Below, one piece after another: positions 37,973-52,651 of a stretch of DNA of 64,000 bases (the stretch's first letter is position 1; each line of letters begins with the position of its first letter). Location of the stretch: the sequence record MH383160.1; one strand, written 5' to 3'. The translations under genes and the position numbers were made by a program. Under the pieces are notes generated by a model. The model worked only from the letters and a program-made list of their open reading frames with translations, was not told where the DNA came from and did not search any database.

Positions 37973-38584
37973 TCAATCATGTTTATTCAATTTCTTCTGT
38001 TCTTTTTTCAAAGCTTTCATATGACGACCAAACTCTCGAACATGCCATAGATGATCAGTTTCCCATAATTCTTGACGTAACCTACGTTCTTCTAGTAGTT
38101 TCGACTTGTCAATGTTATTTTTCTTTTTTTGTACATTAAAGAAATTATTCATATGTTCTTGGAGAAGATTACGACCTTTAACTTTCTCAAGAAACTCATC
38201 AACTGTTTCAGTTTTATTCGAACGTAGTTGATTACATCTGGAGCACATAGTATTAAAGTTTGACTCTAAATCAGGTCCACCCTTAGATGCCAGATGATTA
38301 TGGTCAACTGTCATTAAAACTTCATAAAGACCACATACAGCATATACATTTAAATGTGGTTTACCATATACTGGATCAGAACATAATGAACGTTCAATGC
38401 GTACTTCAGTAGCTTCAATCCCACATGCCACGCATTTTGGATTCTTAACAAAAGTAAGAACTTTTTGTGGGAAATATCGAAAAGTAATACCATTTAAAGT
38501 GTAGCGTTTCATCTTAGTACTTCGTTGATTTAATTCTTCAAGAAGTGATAATTTTGTCGTATAGTAAACATGATATTTGTTCAT
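37973..38584 (-). CDS. HNH endonuclease
   Basis: CVAC; MTVDH.H.ASKGG.D..SN.NTMCSRCN; start moved to 38584. Confidence 0.8.
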   Translation of the reverse strand: MNKYHVYYTTKLSLLEELNQRSTKMKRYTLNGITFRYFPQKVLTFVKNPKCVACGIEATEVRIERSLCSDPVYGKPHLNVYAVCGLYEVLMTVDHNHLASKGGPDLESNFNTMCSRCNQLRSNKTETVDEFLEKVKGRNLLQEHMNNFFNVQKKKNNIDKSKLLEERRLRQELWETDHLWHVREFGRHMKALKKEQKKLNKHD

Positions 38585-38585
38585 T

Positions 38586-38894
38586 TTATTCCTTGATATT
38601 GATTTTAATATCTTTACCTTGTAAATCACGAATAGTTTTAATCAATGCGTCGTGTTTTAAAGCACATTCATTGTAGACTGCATCCCAACGAGTAAGTACT
38701 TTAAGAATTTCTGCACCATCATAACCTTTAAAACCATTTTTGTCAATCATAATTTTTTGTGGTAGAGGTGTATCATCATCACATCTTTCTAACAGAATTT
38801 CTTGTTTAATTGGTGCGGGGGATTGTAGTTTTACTTGCTCGGCACACCCACTTATAATTAAAAAAGAAATCATTGGAACTAATAATTTTTTCAT
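38586..38894 (-). CDS. o-spanin (Rz1-like lipoprotein)
   Basis: Lipobox IISGC; extra Cys residues; overlaps i-spanin stop. Confidence 0.8.
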   Translation of the reverse strand: MKKLLVPMISFLIISGCAEQVKLQSPAPIKQEILLERCDDDTPLPQKIMIDKNGFKGYDGAEILKVLTRWDAVYNECALKHDALIKTIRDLQGKDIKINIKE

Positions 38895-39265
38895 TTGAAT
38901 TTATTCCTCGCTGCTTGAGAATTTTGTTTTAGTTCATTCAGTACTTTTACACCATCTTCATCTAAACATACATTCTTATAAACTTCACGTTCTACAATAA
39001 AAGGAACCTTTGTTTCAATAACTTTAGCATTATCTTCCATGATTTTTTTAGTTTCAAGGTAATTTTTTGCATTTTCTTGTTGCATTTTATCCAAGGCGGT
39101 ATCAACTTTTTTAGCTATTTGTTGCTCTATGCTTTGTTGATATCCACTGTAATAAGTATTAGCTTCCCAACCAGCATAAGCTGAACCGCCAATTAATAAT
39201 ACAAAAGAAATTGGTTTCCAAAATGGAATAAGAATTTTTGAAACAATTATTTCTAACATACTCAT
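38891..39265 (-). CDS. i-spanin (Rz-like)
   Basis: N-terminal TM, coiled coil, VYKNVCLDEDGVKVLN; TAAATA at 39293-39298. Confidence 0.8.
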   Translation of the reverse strand: MSMLEIIVSKILIPFWKPISFVLLIGGSAYAGWEANTYYSGYQQSIEQQIAKKVDTALDKMQQENAKNYLETKKIMEDNAKVIETKVPFIVEREVYKNVCLDEDGVKVLNELKQNSQAARNKFK

Positions 39266-39318
39266 AATAATATCTCCTATAGTTGATGATATTATTTAGA
39301 GTATACAATTGTATAGTT

Positions 39319-39738
39319 TTACAACATTTTTTGAATATGTTCTACTAGTTCATACAGCTTCGTTTCATTATTCTCGAACTTTTCATCAACTTCAACATTG
39401 AATTTTTCTTCTAGTTCCATGACCATTTCAAGCCAATCAAGCCAATCAAAATTGAATTTTTCTTCGACTTCCAATTTAGTAAGATTGAAGTTCGCTGATA
39501 CCTCATTCTCTGATGTATCACAGTAACGAGTAGTGATGAATTTGACAATTTCTTTTTCAACATCGTTTAATTCACGAGTTTGATATTCGGGCTGAAGATA
39601 CCACCATTCTCCCTTATTAATAGATTCCAATTCTTGTTTGATTTCATGCATTACTTTATAACGGTCAGTACTTTTATCAATAGAATTTACTTCTTGGTTC
39701 AATACATGTAGTGCATTTTTAATACGTTCATTTAACAT
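39319..39738 (-). CDS. acyl carrier protein-like protein lacking the phosphopantetheine serine, with N-terminal extension
   Basis: FDWLDWLEMVMELEEKFNVEV aligns with ACP [21 protein letters not shown]; W at the Ser36 position. Confidence 0.75.
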   Translation of the reverse strand: MLNERIKNALHVLNQEVNSIDKSTDRYKVMHEIKQELESINKGEWWYLQPEYQTRELNDVEKEIVKFITTRYCDTSENEVSANFNLTKLEVEEKFNFDWLDWLEMVMELEEKFNVEVDEKFENNETKLYELVEHIQKML

Positions 39739-39812
39739 TTTATCACCTTATAAAAAAAGAGAACTCCATATGAAGTTCTCTGATTATACATAATTACTTT
39801 TTCTATGTCAAG

Positions 39813-42602
39813 TTATAAATCACGGAAACGATTTGGTGTGTTTAAGCGGTACATTGAGTATAATCCCAATCCACGCATAATCTCACCTGCCCAGAAACCA
39901 AAAAACATACCATTATCAGTACCTTCTCTAACTGCTGGACTCCATGAACCATTCATTGGTGAACCTGGATTTACAATAACATAATTCTTTTGAAGTTCGA
40001 GAACTAAGTTATCAGCGAGTGTTGTTAGACCTTCTATTTTACATCCAGCCAATCCAGCAGCACAAGCCCCAGCTAACCACAACCCACACATATGACCTGT
40101 AAAGTCCCAATCTGGACCTTCAACTGTGCCATCTTTATTGAAGATTGTTGGTGAACGACCATCATTATCTTTTTGAAATTGAATTAAAAAGTGAATCCAA
40201 TTCTCACAAAATTCAACAAGATCTGCTGGTGGTTCAATTCCTCTCTCTGCGAGTTCTTGCCATGCTCTGGCAGCCCCAAAGAACGCACGTGGTTCATACC
40301 CACTCCATGCTTGATCACCCCAATGTAGCATAGTAAATGTATCTGGTTCACCATATTTTAAGTTATCCCAGCGGTTCCAAACATATGCTTGTGCACACGG
40401 ACCAACAGTACCGAATTGTTGAGTAAACCATGTTTGGGAATCTTTCATAAAGCTTAACATGTTTCCTAAGCGTGTGTTATCTACTGGCTGGTCTTTAAAA
40501 CAATATATCACAGGATATTGATAACCTGGATACGGTAAACCACGCCATCCTGAATACTGGTTCGCATACGGGTCAGTGATGTTAGAAAATGGTATTGTTC
40601 CTGGTGTGTAATGCAATGAGTTTAACAAATAATCTTTGATTACACAATCCCCTAACTGTGCAGTATATGGTGATTCACCTGCAATTGTTATTGAAAATGT
40701 CATAGTATAGTCATCACCGTCAGCATCCGTGTATAATTCTGGAATGTCATTAATACAATACCAATCAATTATTGCAGCAACACCATCTACTGGGGTTGTA
40801 TCAGGTAAAATAGTAATATCTTCTAGTTCACTATAAACTGGTGCATCTGGTCTTGGGTCAGAACTTGGATGATTTGGCTGATACCCAGATAAACGTAATG
40901 TATCGGGACTTAGTGTGATTGTAGTCCATTCCCCGTGTGTTGCAGGAATCATCCACCACCATCTCCAACCATTATCATCTACAATTCTTATATTGTAATC
41001 ATCTTCATATGAACGATAGGTAAAAGATTTAACTTCAGACTTATTTGTTGCTAATAACCAAAATCCAATAACAGCACCATCATCTTCACCACAAACTAAC
41101 TGATTAATGGTATCGCGGCGTGTAACTAATATATCAGTACTATATATCATTTCGGACGTAGCTGCACCATAAGGAACAACAATTCTACTATCAGCAATTA
41201 TATAAGGGGAACCATCTGCTTTCTTTTCTCTAACAAATGCACTTAAAGGTGTTAATGAATGTGTGATATTTTGGTCTTTACTTTCCGGTAAGCCACAACG
41301 ATAACGAACAACATCATGGTCATTTTTTGTTTTTGACAATTCCAGTACTGGTTTAAATGATAACGGCTTACCATCATCACATACACCACCATAGTCTACA
41401 AGTAATTTAGAATCAGCATTGACCCTGAACCAAATAGCTTGTTGTTCCATTGTACTTTGTGCACTTTGGTCTTGCCTGATAGTAATATATCCTAGAGAAT
41501 TTCTACCAAACTTAGCAATAGCATCACTTGGATAAAAATATTCATAGGAAATACCATCAGTGAATGGTGTGGTTACAATTGTACTTTGTCTGAAAAATTT
41601 ATCTCTGGAGTCAATATCACCATAAGCATAACACGTTAGTAGTGAACATTTCCAACCCAAATAATGTTTTCTTTCTTTTGTTATTTTATATAACAAATAA
41701 GAAGCATCACTAAACCACAATTCTGCATCTGATGCGTTATCCGCAAATTCCAAATCAATTGGAACATGAAGTGGGCGGTTGTGTTGCATTTCATTTCGTT
41801 GAATTATCACACCACCATATTCTACTGGTTGACGATTTGCAAAATTTAATTTATATACACCATTAATTGTTGTATTCTTTAATTGAACAGTTCCTTTTTC
41901 AGATTCGTCAAAACCTTCTGCTAAAATATTACCATCCCAGTCTATTTTTCTACCCATGAAATCGATAATCCAGTCAACATCATATTGTTCACCTGGTGTA
42001 TCCCAATCAACACTACCATCTGGTAATAATGCTTTTACTGACGCATTTATTTGGTTCCATGCTAAAGCACCTTTGAATGCAAATGTTACTTTATCCAAGA
42101 ACTGACCATAATAAGGTGCACCATGTGGTATTTTACATTGTCCATTTGTAAATGTAAATTCTACACCCTTGAAACCACCATGTGTAGGCCATCCATCATC
42201 AGCTAAAGGCCAGTTAGCCAATATAGGTTCTTTGGCATTAACTATCCAGTTACATTGTAGTGGTGTAGGTGGATCTGGTAATTCACGTCCAGCATAAAAG
42301 TACTGATGATATGCATCCCAGTACCATTTGGCTTTATCTAAAAACATTGGATCATTTGTTGCCAGATACGCATAAATGTATCCTAAAATTAATAGACTTT
42401 GACCTTCTGTTGTCCCGTCACCGTTTGGTTGACCTTCCATTGCAGAATAGTTAATAAAATGACGGTTGTTCGCCAAAACACCCTGATTATTCACCACATA
42501 ATGTTGTACTGTTGGGTCTATTGTATCACCAGTATTTCTTTCAATAAATTTGTGATGCCCATAAAGAAGTTGTACAATATTATCAATATTATTGTTTAAC
42601 AT
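39813..42602 (-). CDS. GH8-like glycoside hydrolase with large insertion, probably virion-associated
   Basis: TTEGQSLLILG and NASDAELW match the GH8 SEGQ and ASDxD motifs; downstream of a late promoter and a fibre-type gene. Confidence 0.6.
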   Translation of the reverse strand: MLNNNIDNIVQLLYGHHKFIERNTGDTIDPTVQHYVVNNQGVLANNRHFINYSAMEGQPNGDGTTEGQSLLILGYIYAYLATNDPMFLDKAKWYWDAYHQYFYAGRELPDPPTPLQCNWIVNAKEPILANWPLADDGWPTHGGFKGVEFTFTNGQCKIPHGAPYYGQFLDKVTFAFKGALAWNQINASVKALLPDGSVDWDTPGEQYDVDWIIDFMGRKIDWDGNILAEGFDESEKGTVQLKNTTINGVYKLNFANRQPVEYGGVIIQRNEMQHNRPLHVPIDLEFADNASDAELWFSDASYLLYKITKERKHYLGWKCSLLTCYAYGDIDSRDKFFRQSTIVTTPFTDGISYEYFYPSDAIAKFGRNSLGYITIRQDQSAQSTMEQQAIWFRVNADSKLLVDYGGVCDDGKPLSFKPVLELSKTKNDHDVVRYRCGLPESKDQNITHSLTPLSAFVREKKADGSPYIIADSRIVVPYGAATSEMIYSTDILVTRRDTINQLVCGEDDGAVIGFWLLATNKSEVKSFTYRSYEDDYNIRIVDDNGWRWWWMIPATHGEWTTITLSPDTLRLSGYQPNHPSSDPRPDAPVYSELEDITILPDTTPVDGVAAIIDWYCINDIPELYTDADGDDYTMTFSITIAGESPYTAQLGDCVIKDYLLNSLHYTPGTIPFSNITDPYANQYSGWRGLPYPGYQYPVIYCFKDQPVDNTRLGNMLSFMKDSQTWFTQQFGTVGPCAQAYVWNRWDNLKYGEPDTFTMLHWGDQAWSGYEPRAFFGAARAWQELAERGIEPPADLVEFCENWIHFLIQFQKDNDGRSPTIFNKDGTVEGPDWDFTGHMCGLWLAGACAAGLAGCKIEGLTTLADNLVLELQKNYVIVNPGSPMNGSWSPAVREGTDNGMFFGFWAGEIMRGLGLYSMYRLNTPNRFRDL

Positions 42603-42603
42603 A

Positions 42604-43231
42604 TCATACTCCTGCTCTAATTAATGCACCGTACCATGTAACTCCTTTATCATATGTTTCTAATGAAATAATATCTTTTTCACCAATTTCATAAGAAAGA
42701 ACAACTGGTCTGTTATATGACCATTTAACATTAGAACCCCAATTAACTAGGTTTGAACCTGTTTGTTGTGTTAATAGGATGGTAATTGAATAAACTTCAG
42801 TAGGAGCCGCACCAATCGAAATAGTAGTATTTCTATCAGATAAATTAATATTAAAAACAGCATTGCCCGACAGTGGATTAATTAAAATATTATTAGAACT
42901 TAATACATTATATAACTTATTACTTGCACTATCATATAATGTTACCCATTCTGTTTCATGATTCTCGTTAGTAGCTTTAGCTTTTATCTTAACATTATTT
43001 TCAGAATCAGTCATTCCAGTCCATCCAGATATAATAAAAGAACTGTTTTTATTAGTTCCGAATGATGCAATCACAGAATCACTAAGAGAACTATCTTCAC
43101 CATCAATAGATCCGAGTACTGACAATGTTAAAACCATCATTTTTAATGTCTACACCAGTTGCACCTGAAAAATTATTTTGAAATTTAATAACTCCGGTAG
43201 TGTGGATATCTGTGAAAATTTGTTGTGCCAT
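42604..43231 (-). pseudogene. tail-associated gene split by an apparent +1 frameshift (43231..43103 and 43140..42604)
   Basis: ATG 43231 has AAGGA SD and TAAATA at 43261-43266; ATG 43140 has no SD; frames overlap at 43106-43149. Confidence 0.5.
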
Positions 43232-44941: not shown

Positions 44942-45451
44942 TTAACCACCATACTTTGACTTGTATGTTTCAAGTGATAAAGAAATACGATTTTGCTTTT
45001 TAATTCTTTCATCAATATCCTTTGAATTCTTCACACTTCGGTATACGTCAGCTAGTAAATTATAATCTTCTTTATTTGAGCTATGCTGTGCCCAACCTAT
45101 CTCTGTTTTAATACGAACATTTGCTTTATTTGACGAGTAAAAGAAACTGAATCCATTGGACCCATCAAAAATATCAAAAGTATCTACCCAATCACCATAA
45201 GGAAAGCTCATTGGAACTGACTCATGGTCTATTGTGATATCCGATAAATTTTTTGAACAGTACTTCGCAAAGTGATAAACGATTGGATCACATTTTGATA
45301 ATTCGTATTTGTATTCAATGATAGTTTTTCTATTAGCATCATTGATAGCATATTCTTTTATCAATGGACTTTTTTTGATGATAAGAGTCCATAGAAACGA
45401 TTCTAATCCTGTTTCATCAACTTTTTGTTTCTTTTTGAAAAATGAAATCAT
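44942..45451 (-). CDS. hypothetical protein, tandem triplet C
   Basis: IIKKSPLIKE...DANRKTIIEYKYELSK. Confidence 0.75.
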   Translation of the reverse strand: MISFFKKKQKVDETGLESFLWTLIIKKSPLIKEYAINDANRKTIIEYKYELSKCDPIVYHFAKYCSKNLSDITIDHESVPMSFPYGDWVDTFDIFDGSNGFSFFYSSNKANVRIKTEIGWAQHSSNKEDYNLLADVYRSVKNSKDIDERIKKQNRISLSLETYKSKYGG

Positions 45452-45969
45452 TTATATAAACCCTTAATTTTCTGTCTATTATGTATATCATTTTGCTGGA
45501 TTTTCAATTTAGTAAGGTTGTTTCTTACACCTTCAACACCACGCATTATTTGTAACATAATTAGTGATTCGTCATATGTTAGGACATTGCTATTATTATC
45601 GATATATACTTTCACTCCACTTTCAAGATAATCATTTTCTTTGGAGTTAAAGTTTCTAATAACAAACTTAACGCCATTTGATGCATCACTGAAAACATAT
45701 CGTTCCGCACCGTAGAATGTTTTTCCACGAAATAAACCGCCGTCTTCCCACTTCCAACGACTAGATTCATAATCATTAACGTAATCAATGATTAAAGAAA
45801 GTAAAGGGTGTTTGCTCAATTTATATTTTGCATCTAACAGGATACGTCTATCATTATCTGTGGTGATAATATCCTTTAGTGAGTAGCTTTTAGATATAAT
45901 TTTAAAGATAATTTCATGCCAAATTAAAGTACTGTTTTGTTTTCCAACTGATCCAAAAAACATATCCAT
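45448..45969 (-). CDS. hypothetical protein, tandem triplet C
   Basis: IISKSYSLKD...DNDRRILLDAKYKLSK. Confidence 0.75.
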   Translation of the reverse strand: MDMFFGSVGKQNSTLIWHEIIFKIISKSYSLKDIITTDNDRRILLDAKYKLSKHPLLSLIIDYVNDYESSRWKWEDGGLFRGKTFYGAERYVFSDASNGVKFVIRNFNSKENDYLESGVKVYIDNNSNVLTYDESLIMLQIMRGVEGVRNNLTKLKIQQNDIHNRQKIKGLYK

Positions 45970-45975
45970 TCCTCA

Positions 45976-46542
45976 TTAGTATAAATCAGTAATGTCTTTG
46001 TATGCATTAATCTGTTTTTGTTGTAATGAAAGTTCATTGAGTTTAGTTACCATCTTATCTACACCAACACGTGTATAGAAAATAATTAATGAATCTAAAT
46101 TGCCTAGAGTAATTCTTGAACTGTAAGTTGAAAGTTTTCTTGCATAAACATAAATTTCTTCTTCACTTGGTAAACGTTTCTCAATCTGCAAGATTTCCTC
46201 ACCATTCGGCTCATAATCGATTTCAAATTCAACTCCCATCACTGTGTCTTGAATGCGATCTGTATATGAACCACCGTAAAAATACTCTCTTGGTTTGGCT
46301 CTCCAACGAGGACTAAATGGGTCAGATGCGTATTCTTTTACAAATTTGTAAAAGGACATTTTACTGAGCATATATTTCATCTCAATTAGTGCTTTACGGT
46401 CATCATCAGTTTTAAACTCTGCTTTGAGCGATGGACTTTTACACAGTAACTTAACTAAATTGTTGTACATCTTTAATGTACGTTGTTCTTTCATTTCTTT
46501 GATTTTGTGACGTTTTGGTGGTGGTAATAAAGTTTTGACCAT
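45976..46542 (-). CDS. hypothetical protein, tandem triplet C
   Basis: LLCKSPSLKA...DDDRKALIEMKYMLSK. Confidence 0.75.
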   Translation of the reverse strand: MVKTLLPPPKRHKIKEMKEQRTLKMYNNLVKLLCKSPSLKAEFKTDDDRKALIEMKYMLSKMSFYKFVKEYASDPFSPRWRAKPREYFYGGSYTDRIQDTVMGVEFEIDYEPNGEEILQIEKRLPSEEEIYVYARKLSTYSSRITLGNLDSLIIFYTRVGVDKMVTKLNELSLQQKQINAYKDITDLY

Positions 46543-46609: not shown

Positions 46610-49339
46610 TTATTTCCAACGTGTACCTGGACCTGATGGTACACCAGTACTGGCAGGTATCGCTGAACCACGTTTCGTTGTACTTGGACGATATGTCAAA
46701 AAACGAGTTACTTTTTCTGTATCAATTGAAGTTATTCCTGAAGTTCCAGTAACTATCTTACCAATGTAAGTGCTAGTTAAAGATTCATCAATTGTTTCAG
46801 TACTAATAACATATGACGCTTTCTTAGTATTCCTGTTCATTTGTATATACAAATAGAACGTAGTATTAGCTGGGTTACTTTTTACAGTACTTAAATCAAC
46901 ACTTTGTATAGGTAGTCTGTCGAAAATTCCACCTAAAAACACCGGAACTTCACGTGTAAAGTACACTGAGAATCCTTGTGCAACGTCTTGTGATACTACC
47001 ACAATCTTTTCTTTAACGCTACCATTTCCGCTAATTAAACCATCCATTTCAGCAGATGTTGTACCAAAAACGCTGAATACAGATTTGGTTTGATAGTCAG
47101 AATCTTGAAAATTGTAATATCCAAAACCAACACCAGGAATAACACCATGTTGATATGCTGCACCAAGTTGGATGTAACTAGATGATAAAAAACGATTTGA
47201 TGTTATGACACCATCTACTGTTTTAGCTATCATCATCTTAAATTGTGCATTACCTGGTTGTGAAAATTGATGAACAGCATCAACACCAATGTAACCAAAT
47301 CCTGAATATTTTGCAACTGTTAGACCAGTACAACGTTTCATATATGCTTCAGTAATAATTCCTGTAACAGAACTAAGTGTCTCATATCTAGTACTCACCA
47401 ATGTAGCTGAAGTTATGTTAGTTCCAGATAATACAACATCAACTTCGGCATAGATTGCATAACCTTGGTTATTGTTAAGATTATATGCTGAAACTACTGC
47501 GATGGATTTAGAAAAAGTATTATCAGGTACATAATATAATACAATTTGTCCAGATAGTGTACCAACAATGCCAGAGTTTCCTATATTAGCAAAAATATCT
47601 TGTTTTAATGATTCTAATACCGTTGGTTCTATTGTATATGTTTCATCAAATTCTAAAGTATCTGGATTTAATAATCCACCACTTGTTTTATATACACCTT
47701 CAATGAATGATGTTCCATAGCATCTAACACTACCATCGGTATCAACAAGAGAAATCATAGCAGTGTATGTAAAATCATCGCCTATTTGTTTACGATTAGA
47801 TTGTGGTGCAAAACCATTTAATGTAGTATTATTTTGAACTGAGTTATATTGATATGTTGGTTGTGAACCTATTTCAGAAAAAACAGTATTATTATAATTA
47901 TATGTTACATCATCATACGTACCAGAACATGCTAATAATATTTTTCTATTATCGATGAAACGTACACCTAAAAGGTTTGCACCAACAGCACTACCAAAAA
48001 CTGGTAAAACGTTTGCATTTATAACGTTACTTGCGGTTCTAGTACTGGCAACCCATGAATCAAACGGTGTACCACTAACCTTATATCGTTGTAGACCATA
48101 AAATTCAGTTGAACTCCATCTAAATTTAGATGCAAATACCAAACCATCTTTAGTTTGACATAAACCACCTGCGTTTCCTAATACACCAGCAGCAGTTGTC
48201 CCTGTGAAGTTGACCATATTAATTTCAAATGGGTTAGAAACTTGAAATCCATTATTATATGAAACAGTTGCAGGTGCACGAGCACTACCATCTAGTGACA
48301 TAGATTTTGAGTTTATATTATAAACAAAACTTATTCCAGTACCATAAACTGTTGAAATATACAAAGGTGTAACCATTCGATGTGTTGGATATAAAGTTAC
48401 ACGTATTTTTGATAAATCAGGACTAACGTTGGCTTGAATGTTAAAGTCTGTATAGTCTGAAAATTCTACACGTGATACTGGTGATGTAACTTCGAATAAT
48501 GAATCCGAGCTAGTACCAACACTATATAATTTATCGAACACTCTTATGTTATTAGATGCAGAATAACTTGTGTTTCGAACAGTTTGACCTGATAACCCAG
48601 TAACTTTTGTTAATGATGCCATTGAGCTTGCTTTCACATCACTTAGCTCTACTGTATAAATTGAAAGTGCTAATCCTAAATTAGAAACACTTTTATCTTT
48701 ACACCAAATATAAACCTTTGTCCCAACAATATGTGTATATATTGGCATATCATTACCAAAAGAAGTACTTGGCACTTTAGCATGAATATGTGATATTTCG
48801 TTAAATGTGCCATTGGTTATAGTAAAAATATAATTATCTTCAGTACTTAAACATCCAAGCATCTCATAACCATTAGAGCCAATAAAATACTTAATATTTT
48901 CAGTACTACTCATAATTGAAGGTTTATACATTGAATTGGTTGAAATAACACTTTCTTGTGAAATCATAGTTATATTTCGGAGTTCTCGTATAAATGAATA
49001 ATAAAAACCTTTAGTACTACCATTGGTTCCGCTACGCAGAACAACGGCGGTTCCATCATCTTCAATAATTGTTGGCTGAACTACTTGGTCACTTGACATA
49101 GGTGTAGCACCTTCATACGACCCACTTACGTTTAATGGTAAGTAATCCATTTCTCCTACACGTGATATAGGCAACATATCTAAAATACTTTGAACTTCTG
49201 AACGCTTATATATTGGATATTGAACAATTCCAGTATTGGCATTCGGTGAGGTTCCATTAAAAGTACGCATAGCGTACCTTTGTCCAATTGCCAAGTTCCC
49301 AAGGATCTCGGCACTTCCTATAATTCGTTTTGATGACAT
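46610..49339 (-). CDS. large tail/baseplate-associated structural protein, paralog D
   Basis: Start moved to ATG 49339; shares LRSGTNGS and SQDVAQGF...NPANTTFY with 49955..52651. Confidence 0.7.
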   Translation of the reverse strand: MSSKRIIGSAEILGNLAIGQRYAMRTFNGTSPNANTGIVQYPIYKRSEVQSILDMLPISRVGEMDYLPLNVSGSYEGATPMSSDQVVQPTIIEDDGTAVVLRSGTNGSTKGFYYSFIRELRNITMISQESVISTNSMYKPSIMSSTENIKYFIGSNGYEMLGCLSTEDNYIFTITNGTFNEISHIHAKVPSTSFGNDMPIYTHIVGTKVYIWCKDKSVSNLGLALSIYTVELSDVKASSMASLTKVTGLSGQTVRNTSYSASNNIRVFDKLYSVGTSSDSLFEVTSPVSRVEFSDYTDFNIQANVSPDLSKIRVTLYPTHRMVTPLYISTVYGTGISFVYNINSKSMSLDGSARAPATVSYNNGFQVSNPFEINMVNFTGTTAAGVLGNAGGLCQTKDGLVFASKFRWSSTEFYGLQRYKVSGTPFDSWVASTRTASNVINANVLPVFGSAVGANLLGVRFIDNRKILLACSGTYDDVTYNYNNTVFSEIGSQPTYQYNSVQNNTTLNGFAPQSNRKQIGDDFTYTAMISLVDTDGSVRCYGTSFIEGVYKTSGGLLNPDTLEFDETYTIEPTVLESLKQDIFANIGNSGIVGTLSGQIVLYYVPDNTFSKSIAVVSAYNLNNNQGYAIYAEVDVVLSGTNITSATLVSTRYETLSSVTGIITEAYMKRCTGLTVAKYSGFGYIGVDAVHQFSQPGNAQFKMMIAKTVDGVITSNRFLSSSYIQLGAAYQHGVIPGVGFGYYNFQDSDYQTKSVFSVFGTTSAEMDGLISGNGSVKEKIVVVSQDVAQGFSVYFTREVPVFLGGIFDRLPIQSVDLSTVKSNPANTTFYLYIQMNRNTKKASYVISTETIDESLTSTYIGKIVTGTSGITSIDTEKVTRFLTYRPSTTKRGSAIPASTGVPSGPGTRWK

Positions 49340-49355
49340 CTTTCTTTTCCTTAAT

Positions 49356-49943
49356 TTACCAACCAATTGTACCAGTTTCTGATGGTTTTCCAGTACTGAC
49401 TGGGAATGAAGAACCTTTTTGTGTAACACTAGGTCTATATGTACTAAATCTGGATACTTTATTAATGTTTATATTTGTAATACCACTTGTACCAACGGTC
49501 AGAGTACCAATAAACATTATAATTTCAGATTCTTGTATTTGTGTTGGTGATATTTTATAAATTGGTTCACCGAGAACTAACGTTGCATATACGTATTGTG
49601 TTTGTGTTCCAGATGAAACAGTTGAAGCAAAAATAGAAACTGCTGGAAATTTATAAAGATAACCACCAATAAATGATGGTATCTGTCTATTAAATGTAAG
49701 ACTATAGCCTGATGAAGTAATATTTAGACTAGCGTCATCATACAATTCTCCGTATTGTGTAAGTGGTAATCCATTGACAATAAAGTTAACTTCATCTTTG
49801 GTAATAGAGGGGAATGTACATTCCCCATTTGAATTTGTTGGGTAATAAGTCATATTATTACCTAATACACCAAGACCAGTACTTTTACCCTGAACTGTAA
49901 CTTGTTGCATTGCCTTAAGGTCTGCTCTTATTTTATATGCCAT
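49356..49943 (-). CDS. short structural protein, truncated-type paralog D
   Basis: LPLTQYG motif joined directly to the C-terminal module (YRPSVTQKGSSFPVSTG). Confidence 0.65.
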   Translation of the reverse strand: MAYKIRADLKAMQQVTVQGKSTGLGVLGNNMTYYPTNSNGECTFPSITKDEVNFIVNGLPLTQYGELYDDASLNITSSGYSLTFNRQIPSFIGGYLYKFPAVSIFASTVSSGTQTQYVYATLVLGEPIYKISPTQIQESEIIMFIGTLTVGTSGITNININKVSRFSTYRPSVTQKGSSFPVSTGKPSETGTIGW

Positions 49944-49954
49944 TATGTAATCCT

Positions 49955-52651
49955 TTACCAGTTTATGGTTCCTGTTTGTGATGGTAGACCGTAGCTAACT
50001 GGGAACGATGAACCTGCTGATTCAAGTGAAGCACCAAATATATCTAAACGGGAACGTTTTTGTATATTAATTGTTTCGATTTGAATTGCATTAGTTTGAA
50101 TTGTACCTATCCAAAAAATATTATATGCAGTTGTTCCTGTTTCAGAAATAACATCAGTAGTTATGTAATAGTTTGCCAATCCTTGTTCCAATTTAACATA
50201 TACATAAAATGTTGTATTTGCTGGATTAGACTTAATAGTTCTCAAATCAATATTTGAAACTGGTAGTGAAAATGACTTACCTGAAAGAATAACTGGTGTT
50301 TCCTCTGTAAAATATACAATAAACCCTTGAGCAACGTCCTGGGATACTACGTTAATTGGGCTACCTTGTGCAGTCCAGTTATTATAGTCTGCAATCGTTG
50401 TTCCATATTTTTTGAATGTCATTTTATTTGAGTAATCAATTGGTTCAAAAATTCCAAAACCAATACCAGGTAATGCTGCTGGTTGACTTCCTTGTTCATA
50501 ACTGGCATGAGATCCAGTAATTATAAAACTTGTAAATTGTGCAGTTGATTTAGTTACATATGCTCTAAATTGATGAGTTGCAGTATTACCTATTGTTGGA
50601 TGTGATAATGGGTCAGAACCACCAATGAAGTAGAATGAACCACCATCATATATTGTCAAACCAACAGAAGAAGATGCAATCGAACCATTCCCAGTTGGTG
50701 TAAAGTTATCACCATACGTATTCTCAAGTACTAAACGCTTAAATGTAATAGATGTAATATTACCAACTCTAGTATTGACATTAACTTCAGCAATTCTAAT
50801 ATAGTTTCTATAATCATTAGTAATTGTACTCAACATAACAAAAGCTGGAATGTCTGTTTGTTGTGGAACAAATAGTGTCATATCACGGTATGCTTGTGCT
50901 GATAAATTCCAATCACTTAGAACTTTGGCATATTCAGTATTTCTAAAATTGTCCAGTACTGATTGTGTAACGCTTATAATTCCTGTGCCATTTAAGTTTT
51001 TATCATAGGATAATGATTGTGAATAACGTTGCCCAACCATAAAAATACCACCATTGGTTGTGACAGTTGACCCAGAAATACTACTAATAAAAATTCTATT
51101 ATTTGCATTATCATCAACATTAGCACGTTCAACTGTAGGTTCATAACCTTGTATTGTTCCTAAAGATAATGATTTAAATGTAAAATTAGGAGTACTTTTA
51201 TGAACTGCATATGATGGTCTAAATCCACCACTACCTGATGCACGTGAATATTGTTTAGTACTGTTATCTGGTAGTAATTCTACACCATTAATAAATGAAC
51301 CAACCGCTGAACCAAAAGACGGGCGAACTATACCACCTTTGAAGTCAGTAGAAAGTACAGCACGGACATTCAGCATACTATAAACTATTTGAATAGGAAA
51401 CTTAGCTTTTTGCATAAGTAATGGTTCTGCTAAGTTTGGACATGCAGTACAAAAAGCTTCACCAGAATTCAAATAAAAATATGAACTATAAATGTTTCTT
51501 GCATTTGCATGGTTATACAATGGATCGTTATTTAAAACGTTACCAGTAGGAACTAATGCCGAACCAGTATTAGTTATAACTAATGGTGCTTGATATGAAC
51601 CAATATCGTTACCTGCATCTAATGTACATTGTTTAGTACTCATATTGAACACAAAACTGTAACTATGCTGTGGACGTGTATTATATGTTGCCATTGTAAA
51701 CCAAGCGTCCCCGTTCATTCTAAAGCGGAAATTCTGCGTTCCTGGCTGCTGTGCAACATATAAATCAATTGATGTCATGTAAATCCCAATACCACGTAGA
51801 TTTTGTGGAACATACACATAAGGTTTATCAGCAATATTTGTTGATGTTACCTGATTAGTAATAACCATATTATTTTGTGCAGAATAAGTTGTGTTATAAA
51901 ATGTTTTAGTAGTCCATCCAGTAATTCGAGTTGCAGTATAAGTACCATTGCTTATATTATAAACAACTTTAACAACAACTAATTGTAGTTGGTTATTTTC
52001 ATTAAGTACGTTAAAAACATATATAGAACCATCTTCTGCCATCATAGCATATTCAATACCACCTTCAGGTGATATATCTGCTTGGTTAACGAAAAAACCA
52101 GTATGCAATTTATCATCTAATGTACCATTGGTAATTGATATGAACAAACCATTAGTACTGTTAGAAGTATCAATATATCTACCGAGTAAAATATTTGGAT
52201 CAGTATTGTATAAACCAATCGCAACTCTATTTGAACCAAAAAACCCAGGCTTGTATTGACGACTGGTGTTAATTGTACGGCTCATGTCATCAACTGATAA
52301 TGCGTTAGCCAAATATGAATAAAATAATCCCTCAACACTACCGTTTGTCCCACTACGTAAAAGTACTAGTGTACCATCGTTTTCTAATAAAATTTTATTT
52401 CTACGTTGTGACTGGTTTTCTGATGCACCATTGAAATCCCCAGAAACACCCGCAGGTAGATAGTTTTGTGAACCATAATGGGAGATTGGCATCATACTTA
52501 CTATATCTAGTACTTCATCTCTGGAATAAGTATCTAATTCCAAGTTACCGTTGGAATCAAAAACTTGTTCATTTATTCCTTGAATTGTTCTTTTACCATT
52601 AACTGTCACATTATGTGTGACATCTAAGCCACCATATATTTTCTTTGACAT
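49955..52651 (-). CDS. large tail/baseplate-associated structural protein, paralog D
   Basis: MPISHYG...LRSGTNGS; shared C-terminal module; TAAATA at 52686-52691. Confidence 0.7.
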   Translation of the reverse strand: MSKKIYGGLDVTHNVTVNGKRTIQGINEQVFDSNGNLELDTYSRDEVLDIVSMMPISHYGSQNYLPAGVSGDFNGASENQSQRRNKILLENDGTLVLLRSGTNGSVEGLFYSYLANALSVDDMSRTINTSRQYKPGFFGSNRVAIGLYNTDPNILLGRYIDTSNSTNGLFISITNGTLDDKLHTGFFVNQADISPEGGIEYAMMAEDGSIYVFNVLNENNQLQLVVVKVVYNISNGTYTATRITGWTTKTFYNTTYSAQNNMVITNQVTSTNIADKPYVYVPQNLRGIGIYMTSIDLYVAQQPGTQNFRFRMNGDAWFTMATYNTRPQHSYSFVFNMSTKQCTLDAGNDIGSYQAPLVITNTGSALVPTGNVLNNDPLYNHANARNIYSSYFYLNSGEAFCTACPNLAEPLLMQKAKFPIQIVYSMLNVRAVLSTDFKGGIVRPSFGSAVGSFINGVELLPDNSTKQYSRASGSGGFRPSYAVHKSTPNFTFKSLSLGTIQGYEPTVERANVDDNANNRIFISSISGSTVTTNGGIFMVGQRYSQSLSYDKNLNGTGIISVTQSVLDNFRNTEYAKVLSDWNLSAQAYRDMTLFVPQQTDIPAFVMLSTITNDYRNYIRIAEVNVNTRVGNITSITFKRLVLENTYGDNFTPTGNGSIASSSVGLTIYDGGSFYFIGGSDPLSHPTIGNTATHQFRAYVTKSTAQFTSFIITGSHASYEQGSQPAALPGIGFGIFEPIDYSNKMTFKKYGTTIADYNNWTAQGSPINVVSQDVAQGFIVYFTEETPVILSGKSFSLPVSNIDLRTIKSNPANTTFYVYVKLEQGLANYYITTDVISETGTTAYNIFWIGTIQTNAIQIETINIQKRSRLDIFGASLESAGSSFPVSYGLPSQTGTINW

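Follow-up and report, generated by a model that had tools for sequence, protein, structure and literature searches.

The 64,000-nucleotide (nt) stretch of sequence record MH383160.1 (Escherichia phage UB), called here the window, was found to carry on its minus strand an open reading frame (ORF) of 139 amino acids (aa), at positions 39319-39738 and starting with ATG. The ORF encodes a protein with the fold of acyl carrier protein (ACP), in which the serine that bears the phosphopantetheine (Ppant) cofactor is replaced by tryptophan. Phage UB belongs to Asteriusvirus, a group of ~350-kb Rak2-like jumbo phages infecting enterobacteria. In this protein and its relatives in one of the two clades of the family, designated clade A, the ACP domain is probably no longer a carrier and appears to act as a cofactor-independent binding protein whose serine drifted afterwards. 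An earlier interpretation of the DNA, made from its letters and ORF translations and referred to below as the sequence-only reading, had described the product as an ACP homologue and candidate decoy whose bulky Trp mimics or occludes the acyl site. This interpretation is partly supported, being right on a functional serine-less ACP fold and wrong in the weight placed on the Trp.

In the ORF protein, a conserved helical hairpin of 44 residues precedes a four-helix domain of the AcpP type. The homology of this protein to ACPs is weak from the single sequence. The hidden Markov model check for a PP-binding domain gave a sub-cut-off match to Pfam PP-binding_2 (PF14573; E=0.0096, 16.6 bits against a cut-off of 32), and PF00550 was not reported. 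The best NCBIfam match, TIGR00517 (acyl_carrier), reached E=1.5e-5 with 24.8 bits against a cut-off of 70.45, and PHROG families annotated as acyl carrier protein matched at E=5e-7 and 1.5e-5. The homology is solid when a profile and a structural model are used. A 35-member family profile compared with PDB sequences retrieved E. coli AcpP as its top match (E=3e-15), and the AlphaFold model (predicted local distance difference test, pLDDT, 80.8) contains a helical bundle formed by residues 59-138. All of the best 50 PDB matches of this model in Foldseek (50/50, probability 0.80-1.00) were ACPs or carrier domains, with target-normalised TM-scores (template modelling scores) of 0.5-0.78 against free-standing ACPs. 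The earlier description of the protein as an ACP homologue is thus correct.

The likeness to E. coli AcpP extends from the four-helix fold and a helix II aligned without gaps to the acidic character of the domain (isoelectric point 4.26 versus 4.05 for AcpP) and to AcpP-type entries being the best matches in PDB and NCBIfam. In contrast to AcpP, the ORF protein is without the Ppant serine, scores far under the curated cut-offs, has T39W, A59E and I62E at pocket-lining positions, carries a 58-residue N-terminal addition, and is encoded by a phage beside lysis genes. The N-terminal extension noticed in the sequence-only reading is real and is conserved across ~35 relatives; indeed PHROG 18343, whose annotation is function unknown, matched the ORF protein at E=4e-61 over residues 2-139, hairpin included. 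A profile of the hairpin compared with PDB sequences gave no significant match (best E=1).

Residues D98-W99-L100 align gap-free with D35-S36-L37 of E. coli AcpP, which places the Trp codon (TGG, 39442-39444) exactly at the Ppant serine position, as had been proposed. Helix II (DWLDWLEMVMELEEKF) as a whole aligns gap-free with its AcpP counterpart, and the equivalents of E. coli D35, D38, E41, M44, E47 and E48 are all retained and are invariant or nearly so family-wide, so that the acidic recognition helix is kept as claimed. That the Trp is a sequencing error or a mutation private to one isolate has a negligible probability: TGG occupies the serine site in six independently sequenced genomes (UB, 121Q, phAPEC6, SHEFM2K, WPEC5 and TH47) of two lineages, 22 phage records match the ORF protein with at least 95% identity, and its protein cluster has 24 member sequences. 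The second Trp lineage, ~70% identical, comprises WPEC5, TH47 and the metagenomic P0005 and P0013, and the two lineages are separated by a synonymous divergence (dS) of ~0.8 with a ratio of nonsynonymous to synonymous divergence (dN/dS) of ~0.2. Close relatives within Asteriusvirus include Trp alleles, Ser alleles that use the codon TCA (A4, ph0011 and P0006-P0009), and Asn or Arg alleles (Turkey5, P0012).

The Trp codon lies within a 9-nt repeat, the codons GAT TGG CTT twice in tandem, which had been taken for a tandem duplication. The repeat is present, and it arose by substitution and not by duplication, since the homologues are equally long at this place (DSLDWL versus DWLDWL). It is exact in UB only; 121Q, phAPEC6 and SHEFM2K have ...TGG ATT here, and WPEC5 has GAC in its second unit.

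An exhaustive profile search over 1.8 billion representative proteins gave 172 hits, ~35 of them full-length (122-154 aa) with the N-terminal extension, while the remaining ones were ordinary short ACPs aligned to the C-terminal part alone. All full-length relatives with genomic context occur in Rak2-like jumbo phages upstream of a spanin pair; a search of IMG/VR returned only 121Q, RaK2 and CBB themselves. Wherever the flanking DNA suffices (a few contigs are too short) the gene order is constant: an RlaP-type nucleotidyltransferase gene, a few small genes, the ACP-like gene, the i-spanin and o-spanin genes, often an HNH gene, a DUF7325 gene and a Dps-like gene. The ACP-like gene is therefore syntenic and belongs to the core genes of the Rak2-like jumbo phages.

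Conservation along the protein is uneven. D98 is invariant, and at least 90% of the 35 sequences have R26, D101, E104, M107 and E110 at their respective positions; pairwise identity averages 0.55 in helix II, 0.28 in the hairpin, 0.26 in helices III-IV, 0.19 in helix I and the following loop, and 0.16 in the linker. The hairpin is the second best conserved region, and between UB and the ph0011-type alleles it is 86% identical, against 65% overall. The strongest constraint, as judged from the alignment, is on the classical partner-recognition helix and on the phage-specific hairpin.

A maximum-likelihood tree computed with the serine column omitted splits the family into clades A and B (support 97/92). 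Clade A (17 rows, including UB, RaK2 and several metagenomic phages) has at the serine site S in five rows, W in four, D in three, and T, K, E, R and N in one each, and clade B (18 rows, including CBB) has S in 17 and D in one. At least five changes between Ser and non-Ser are needed on this tree, at least three of which are forced by strongly supported branches. Since acidic, basic, polar and aromatic residues are all accepted, the serine site of clade A behaves as a position released from constraint and not as a selected hydrophobic mimic, and the Trp itself is probably incidental; its retention within the Trp lineage is what chance predicts at 72% overall identity.

These observations bear directly on the earlier proposal of a Trp that imitates or blocks the acyl-pantetheine site and makes the protein a dominant decoy for host AcpS, the Fab, Lpx and Pls enzymes, SpoT or MukB. 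An aromatic residue at the serine site is functional in the mitochondrial ACP (mACP) of Plasmodium falciparum, where F113 is part of the contact surface with Isd11 and the F113A mutant binds less well (PMC8547962), and the phage protein keeps the acidic helix II with which such a decoy would dock. Host enzymes do respond to unmodified ACP, as apo-ACP inhibits the glycerol-3-phosphate acyltransferase PlsB (PMC3896788), and apo- and holo-AcpP stimulate the MukB ATPase equally (PMC8602292). The consensus sigma-70-type match upstream of the gene would permit early expression, and the ACP-like product gp313c is not listed in the phAPEC6 virion proteome, where its neighbour gp314c, the 929-aa tail fibre, is (PMC7247149). 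Set against this, both close and distant relatives have D, E, K, R, N, T or S where UB has Trp, and the chance-level retention of the Trp offers no sign of selection for it. Furthermore, the ACP domain shares only ~27% of its residues with E. coli AcpP and has a rebuilt helix III surface, which makes it a poorer mimic than the clade B proteins, and SpoT reportedly cannot bind apo-ACP (PMC3896788), for which reason it is an unlikely target. A role as a Trp-dependent decoy is accordingly considered improbable, and the idea of the Trp as an acyl-site plug is not supported by the comparison within the subfamily.

The change that sets clade A apart from the carriers seems instead to lie in the acyl pocket. 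When E. coli AcpP was added to the family alignment, clade A differed from it by T39W in 17/17 rows, E58F/Y in 16/17, A59E in 15/17 and I62D/E in 13/17, whereas these changes are missing from clade B, in which, as in AcpP, position 59 is occupied by Ala or an aliphatic residue and position 62 by a hydrophobic one. The corresponding residues of the ORF protein at T39, A59 and I62 are W102, E122 and E125. In acyl-ACP crystal structures, T39, A59 and I62 of AcpP belong to the lining of the pocket that holds the acyl chain between helices II and III, and we infer from the alignment that this pocket was rebuilt or closed at the base of clade A. If so, the domain would have ceased to serve as a carrier and the serine would have become dispensable.

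Selection has acted on the protein since the serine was lost. Between UB and WPEC5, which both have Trp and represent the two lineages, dN is 0.165, dS 0.81 and dN/dS 0.20, which therefore indicates purifying selection. A decaying relic, that is, a carrier without a pathway drifting towards loss, would account for a serine site free to vary, for the loss of upstream genes in Asteriusvirus and for the highest dN/dS of the neighbourhood (0.20-0.40 versus 0.04-0.13). It is nevertheless very unlikely, as dN/dS stays well below 1 over a dS of ~0.8-1.3, conservation is strong in helix II and in the N-terminal hairpin, and the ribosome-binding site is retained. In addition, all 47 phage records with a hit, and the metagenomic relatives too, have an unbroken ORF whose length is conserved, low-quality records excepted. 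In the record of Escherichia phage CMSTMSU (MH494197), a 432-aa 'fusion' coding sequence (A0A2Z5HFQ2 in BFVD; L017 2131-3429) joins part of the nucleotidyltransferase to the ACP-like gene; this is probably a frameshift artefact, because the record is flagged UNVERIFIED_ORG and its neighbouring genes are fragmented.

Several points weigh against a cofactor-independent binding protein. The ACP-like gene is the fastest-evolving one of its neighbourhood: between UB and ph0011 its product is 65% identical and those of the neighbours 85-97%, with dN of 0.215 versus 0.014-0.083 at similar dS (0.54 versus 0.23-0.71) and dN/dS of 0.40 versus 0.04-0.12. Such fast evolution fits an arms race or a partly relaxed constraint on the ACP body, and not a pseudogene. 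Clade B mostly retains Ser (17/18), which makes it probable that the ancestral protein was modified, and the two clades may differ in function. The orientation of the hairpin relative to the ACP domain is uncertain (predicted template modelling score, pTM, 0.58), and binding as the function is something we infer. The divergence between UB and ph0011 was also considered as a mere recombinational swap of alleles and this was rejected, as dS is like that of the neighbours while dN is 3-15x higher; faster protein evolution explains most of it, and recombination could contribute.

With these points taken into account, we still favour a domain that has left the carrier role for cofactor-free binding. 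In this scheme, the rebuilding of the pocket wall at the base of clade A (T39W, E58F/Y, A59E, I62D/E) would have ended the carrier role, after which the dispensable Ppant serine would have been replaced repeatedly (S, W, T, N, R, E, D, K). The Trp of UB would be one such replacement, from a TCA-type Ser codon to TGG, common to one group of E. coli phages. What remains would be a small acidic protein that binds without a cofactor through the face of helix II (D98, D101, E104, M107, E110) and through the hairpin (R26), its partner presenting a basic surface either on a host ACP client that accepts apo-ACP, such as PlsB or MukB, or on a phage protein.

PlsB and MukB are plausible partners by analogy with the effects of apo-ACP described above, in which an unmodified ACP acts on host proteins; there, however, it is the host's own AcpP that acts. 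MukBEF is a target of the T7 protein gp5.9, which inhibits it (PMC7617805). A partner within the phage and one of these two host proteins seem about equally likely. A more specific proposal, in which the cofactor-free ACP mimic serves host takeover or counter-defence by docking through helix II on MukB or PlsB, with the hairpin making the binding inhibitory and the fast change reflecting an arms race, is speculative and has a low probability.

The protein might alternatively be a subunit or adaptor of a phage complex with the RlaP nucleotidyltransferase, the 2-oxoglutarate (2OG)-oxygenase-like protein or the spanins, with no host target. Its synteny is strictly kept over very divergent phages, an overlap of its start with the gene upstream in RaK2, CBB and several metagenomic contigs points to translational coupling, and the Eneladusvirus homologue was detected by liquid chromatography-tandem mass spectrometry of phage preparations (PMC7760394). 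Three points speak against it: every Asteriusvirus genome lacks the oxygenase-like gene and the two PHROG 10375 genes and yet retains the ACP-like gene; the spanins act in the envelope, whereas the ACP-like protein has no signal peptide or membrane segment; and the RlaP enzyme changes at a far lower rate (dN/dS 0.05-0.06), with no sign of co-evolution. An adaptor of this kind is thus a minority possibility.

In RaK2, CBB, Eneladusvirus and many metagenomic relatives, the ACP-like gene begins inside the oxygenase-like gene (PHROG 21561, ~188 aa). The product of the latter has an invariant HxD...H...R motif, and the model (pLDDT 68) retrieved in Foldseek almost only 2OG-Fe(II) oxygenases (best E 6e-4). 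Within this superfamily, some enzymes use substrates tethered to a carrier. Between RaK2 and CBB or GAP32 the PHROG 21561 proteins are 55-64% identical, compared with 20-30% for the ACP-like ones. A link between loss of the serine and loss of this gene was considered and discarded, as the intact gene lies beside T (RaK2), D (P0018, P0029, P0023) and S copies alike, and Asteriusvirus, which is without the gene, has both S and W alleles. A tblastn search with E. coli AcpS gave no hit in any Rak2-like phage, Sfp-type enzymes not having been searched for; therefore the serine forms, if modified at all, would be modified by the host.

A cofactor-free ACP fold is known from Plasmodium falciparum mACP, in which the serine is replaced by Phe and which binds Isd11 of the Isd11-Nfs1 complex and is essential (PMC8547962). 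Both are serine-less ACP folds kept by selection, the UB protein too has an aromatic residue at the serine site, and the parasite protein functions through protein binding by its acidic helices (PMC8547962). They differ in that the Phe of mACP is conserved, forms part of the interface and meets an LYR partner, whereas the serine site of the phage family is variable and no LYR-type protein was identified. Closer to UB, the 'acyl carrier proteins' of CBB (CBB_163), GAP32, Serratia phage BF and Erwinia Eneladusvirus are orthologous, with the same hairpin and the same location between the RlaP nucleotidyltransferase and the spanin pair. Unlike the UB copy, which has lost all three features, these clade B copies keep DSL and an AcpP-like helix III, give Pfam PP-binding hits, and adjoin the 2OG-oxygenase-like gene. 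The description of Eneladusvirus already remarked that an 'acyl carrier protein' adjoins a spanin-like gene (PMC7760394). No study of serine-less phage ACPs was found in the literature searched, and as far as that literature shows, such a fold is undescribed in phages.

ACP is among the most connected of bacterial proteins, and there are very few natural examples of its fold being kept for a cofactor-free job; here a whole clade of very large enterobacterial phages has a serine-less ACP-fold protein as a core gene. The eight residues tolerated at the serine site amount to a natural mutagenesis and offer a clean system for asking what the ACP fold can do alone. Were the partner a host ACP client, the protein would represent a new class of phage proteins for host control; were it a phage protein, the mitochondrial ACP-LYR adaptor principle would have a counterpart in bacterial viruses. 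In either case the GenBank labels 'acyl carrier protein', 'acpP' and 'D-alanyl carrier protein 1' given to these Asteriusvirus genes overstate the ability of the protein.

The coordinates of the gene, its parts and its neighbours are collected in Table 1.

Table 1. Features of the ACP-like gene and its surroundings. Positions are those of the window, except for the PHROG 21561 gene, which is given by locus.
Feature	Position	Strand	Basis and remarks
Whole ORF, 139 aa + stop	39319-39738	minus	ORF list; PHROG 18343 match; N-extended serine-less ACP-fold protein
Shine-Dalgarno-like AAGGTGA	39743-39749	minus	4 nt 5' of ATG, read from sequence
N-terminal helical hairpin, residues 1-44, helices 4-18 and 23-41	39607-39738	minus	model secondary structure
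Arg26 codon, nearly invariant, [S/T]xxR[Y/F] motif	39661-39663	minus	R26 in at least 90% of 35 members
Variable linker, residues 45-58	39565-39606	minus	pLDDT <50 at 45-51; indels in relatives
AcpP-type four-helix ACP domain, residues 59-139	39322-39564	minus	Foldseek, profile versus PDB, TIGR00517
Helix II (recognition helix), residues 98-113	39400-39447	minus	most conserved region of family
Trp99 codon TGG at Ppant serine position (E. coli S36)	39442-39444	minus	codon table and alignment to AcpP
Trp102 codon, at E. coli T39 position	39433-39435	minus	alignment; subfamily hallmark, 17/17 rows
GATTGGCTT x2 (DWL DWL)	39430-39447	minus	substitution-made repeat, no length change; no gap in alignments
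i-spanin	38891-39265	minus	directly 3' of ACP-like gene; PHROG 1152 Rz-like spanin, E=7e-29; neighbour family-wide
o-spanin, lipobox LIISGC	38586-38894	minus	PHROG 2425; start overlaps i-spanin gene end by 4 nt
Sigma-70-type consensus TTGACA-17-TATAAT, 12/12	39783-39811	minus	pattern match; just past tail-fibre gene stop
Terminator-like hairpin, 10-bp stem and T run	39758-39781	minus	pattern match, folding z-score -2.7; between tail-fibre and ACP-like genes
PHROG 21561 gene	L004 4015-4578; L005 4412-4981; also L015, L016, L022-L026		annotated hypothetical or 'oxidoreductase'

Bases 38500-40500 are 99% identical to the corresponding DNA of 121Q, PBECO4, phAPEC6 and other Asteriusvirus phages. 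The location of the gene directly upstream of the spanin pair, another point of the sequence-only reading, was confirmed by the i-spanin match and by the lipobox of the o-spanin. An HNH endonuclease ORF (37973-38629, minus strand) follows directly 3' of the o-spanin gene, with a 44-nt overlap if the longest GTG start is used; an HNH gene occupies this position in most relatives and is absent in CBB and in locus L014. Pfam searches of the neighbouring genes matched HNH and RlaP alone and gave no functional clue. In phage T4 (134908-137464) alc and rnlA precede the spanin pair pseT.3/pseT.2, with alc in the slot upstream of the spanins; the Rak2-like counterpart of this slot holds the ACP-like gene and the RlaP nucleotidyltransferase gene (PF10127, 'RNA repair pathway DNA polymerase beta family'), the analogy being one of position only.

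Both the promoter match and the terminator-like hairpin lie within the 74-nt gap that separates the tail-fibre gene from the ACP-like gene. A transcript from the putative promoter would begin within the 5' arm of the hairpin, and the hairpin might therefore block only read-through from upstream. Upstream of this gap, the 929-aa tail-fibre gene (PHROG 2871) and a 178-aa one (PHROG 32568) form a cassette (39813-43140, minus strand). UB, 121Q, A4 and Turkey5 possess it; WPEC5, ph0011 and Ecwhy_1 lack it, and in these three the ACP-like gene comes directly after the nucleotidyltransferase gene. All four combinations of cassette presence or absence with the S or W allele were seen among the copies examined.

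Further away on the minus strand, three adjacent genes of 169, 173 and 188 aa (44942-46542) look like tandem paralogues sharing motifs such as DDRKALIEMKYMLSK, NDRRILLDAKYKLSK and NRKTIIEYKYELSK. Two tail-fibre-like ORFs of 939 and 898 aa and a 195-aa ORF (46610-52651, also minus) have C-terminal motifs in common, namely VSQDVAQGF.VYFT, TVKSNPANTTFY.Y and ...TYRPS...G...P.STG.PS.[TP]GT..W, which suggests that they form a family of paralogous fibre genes.

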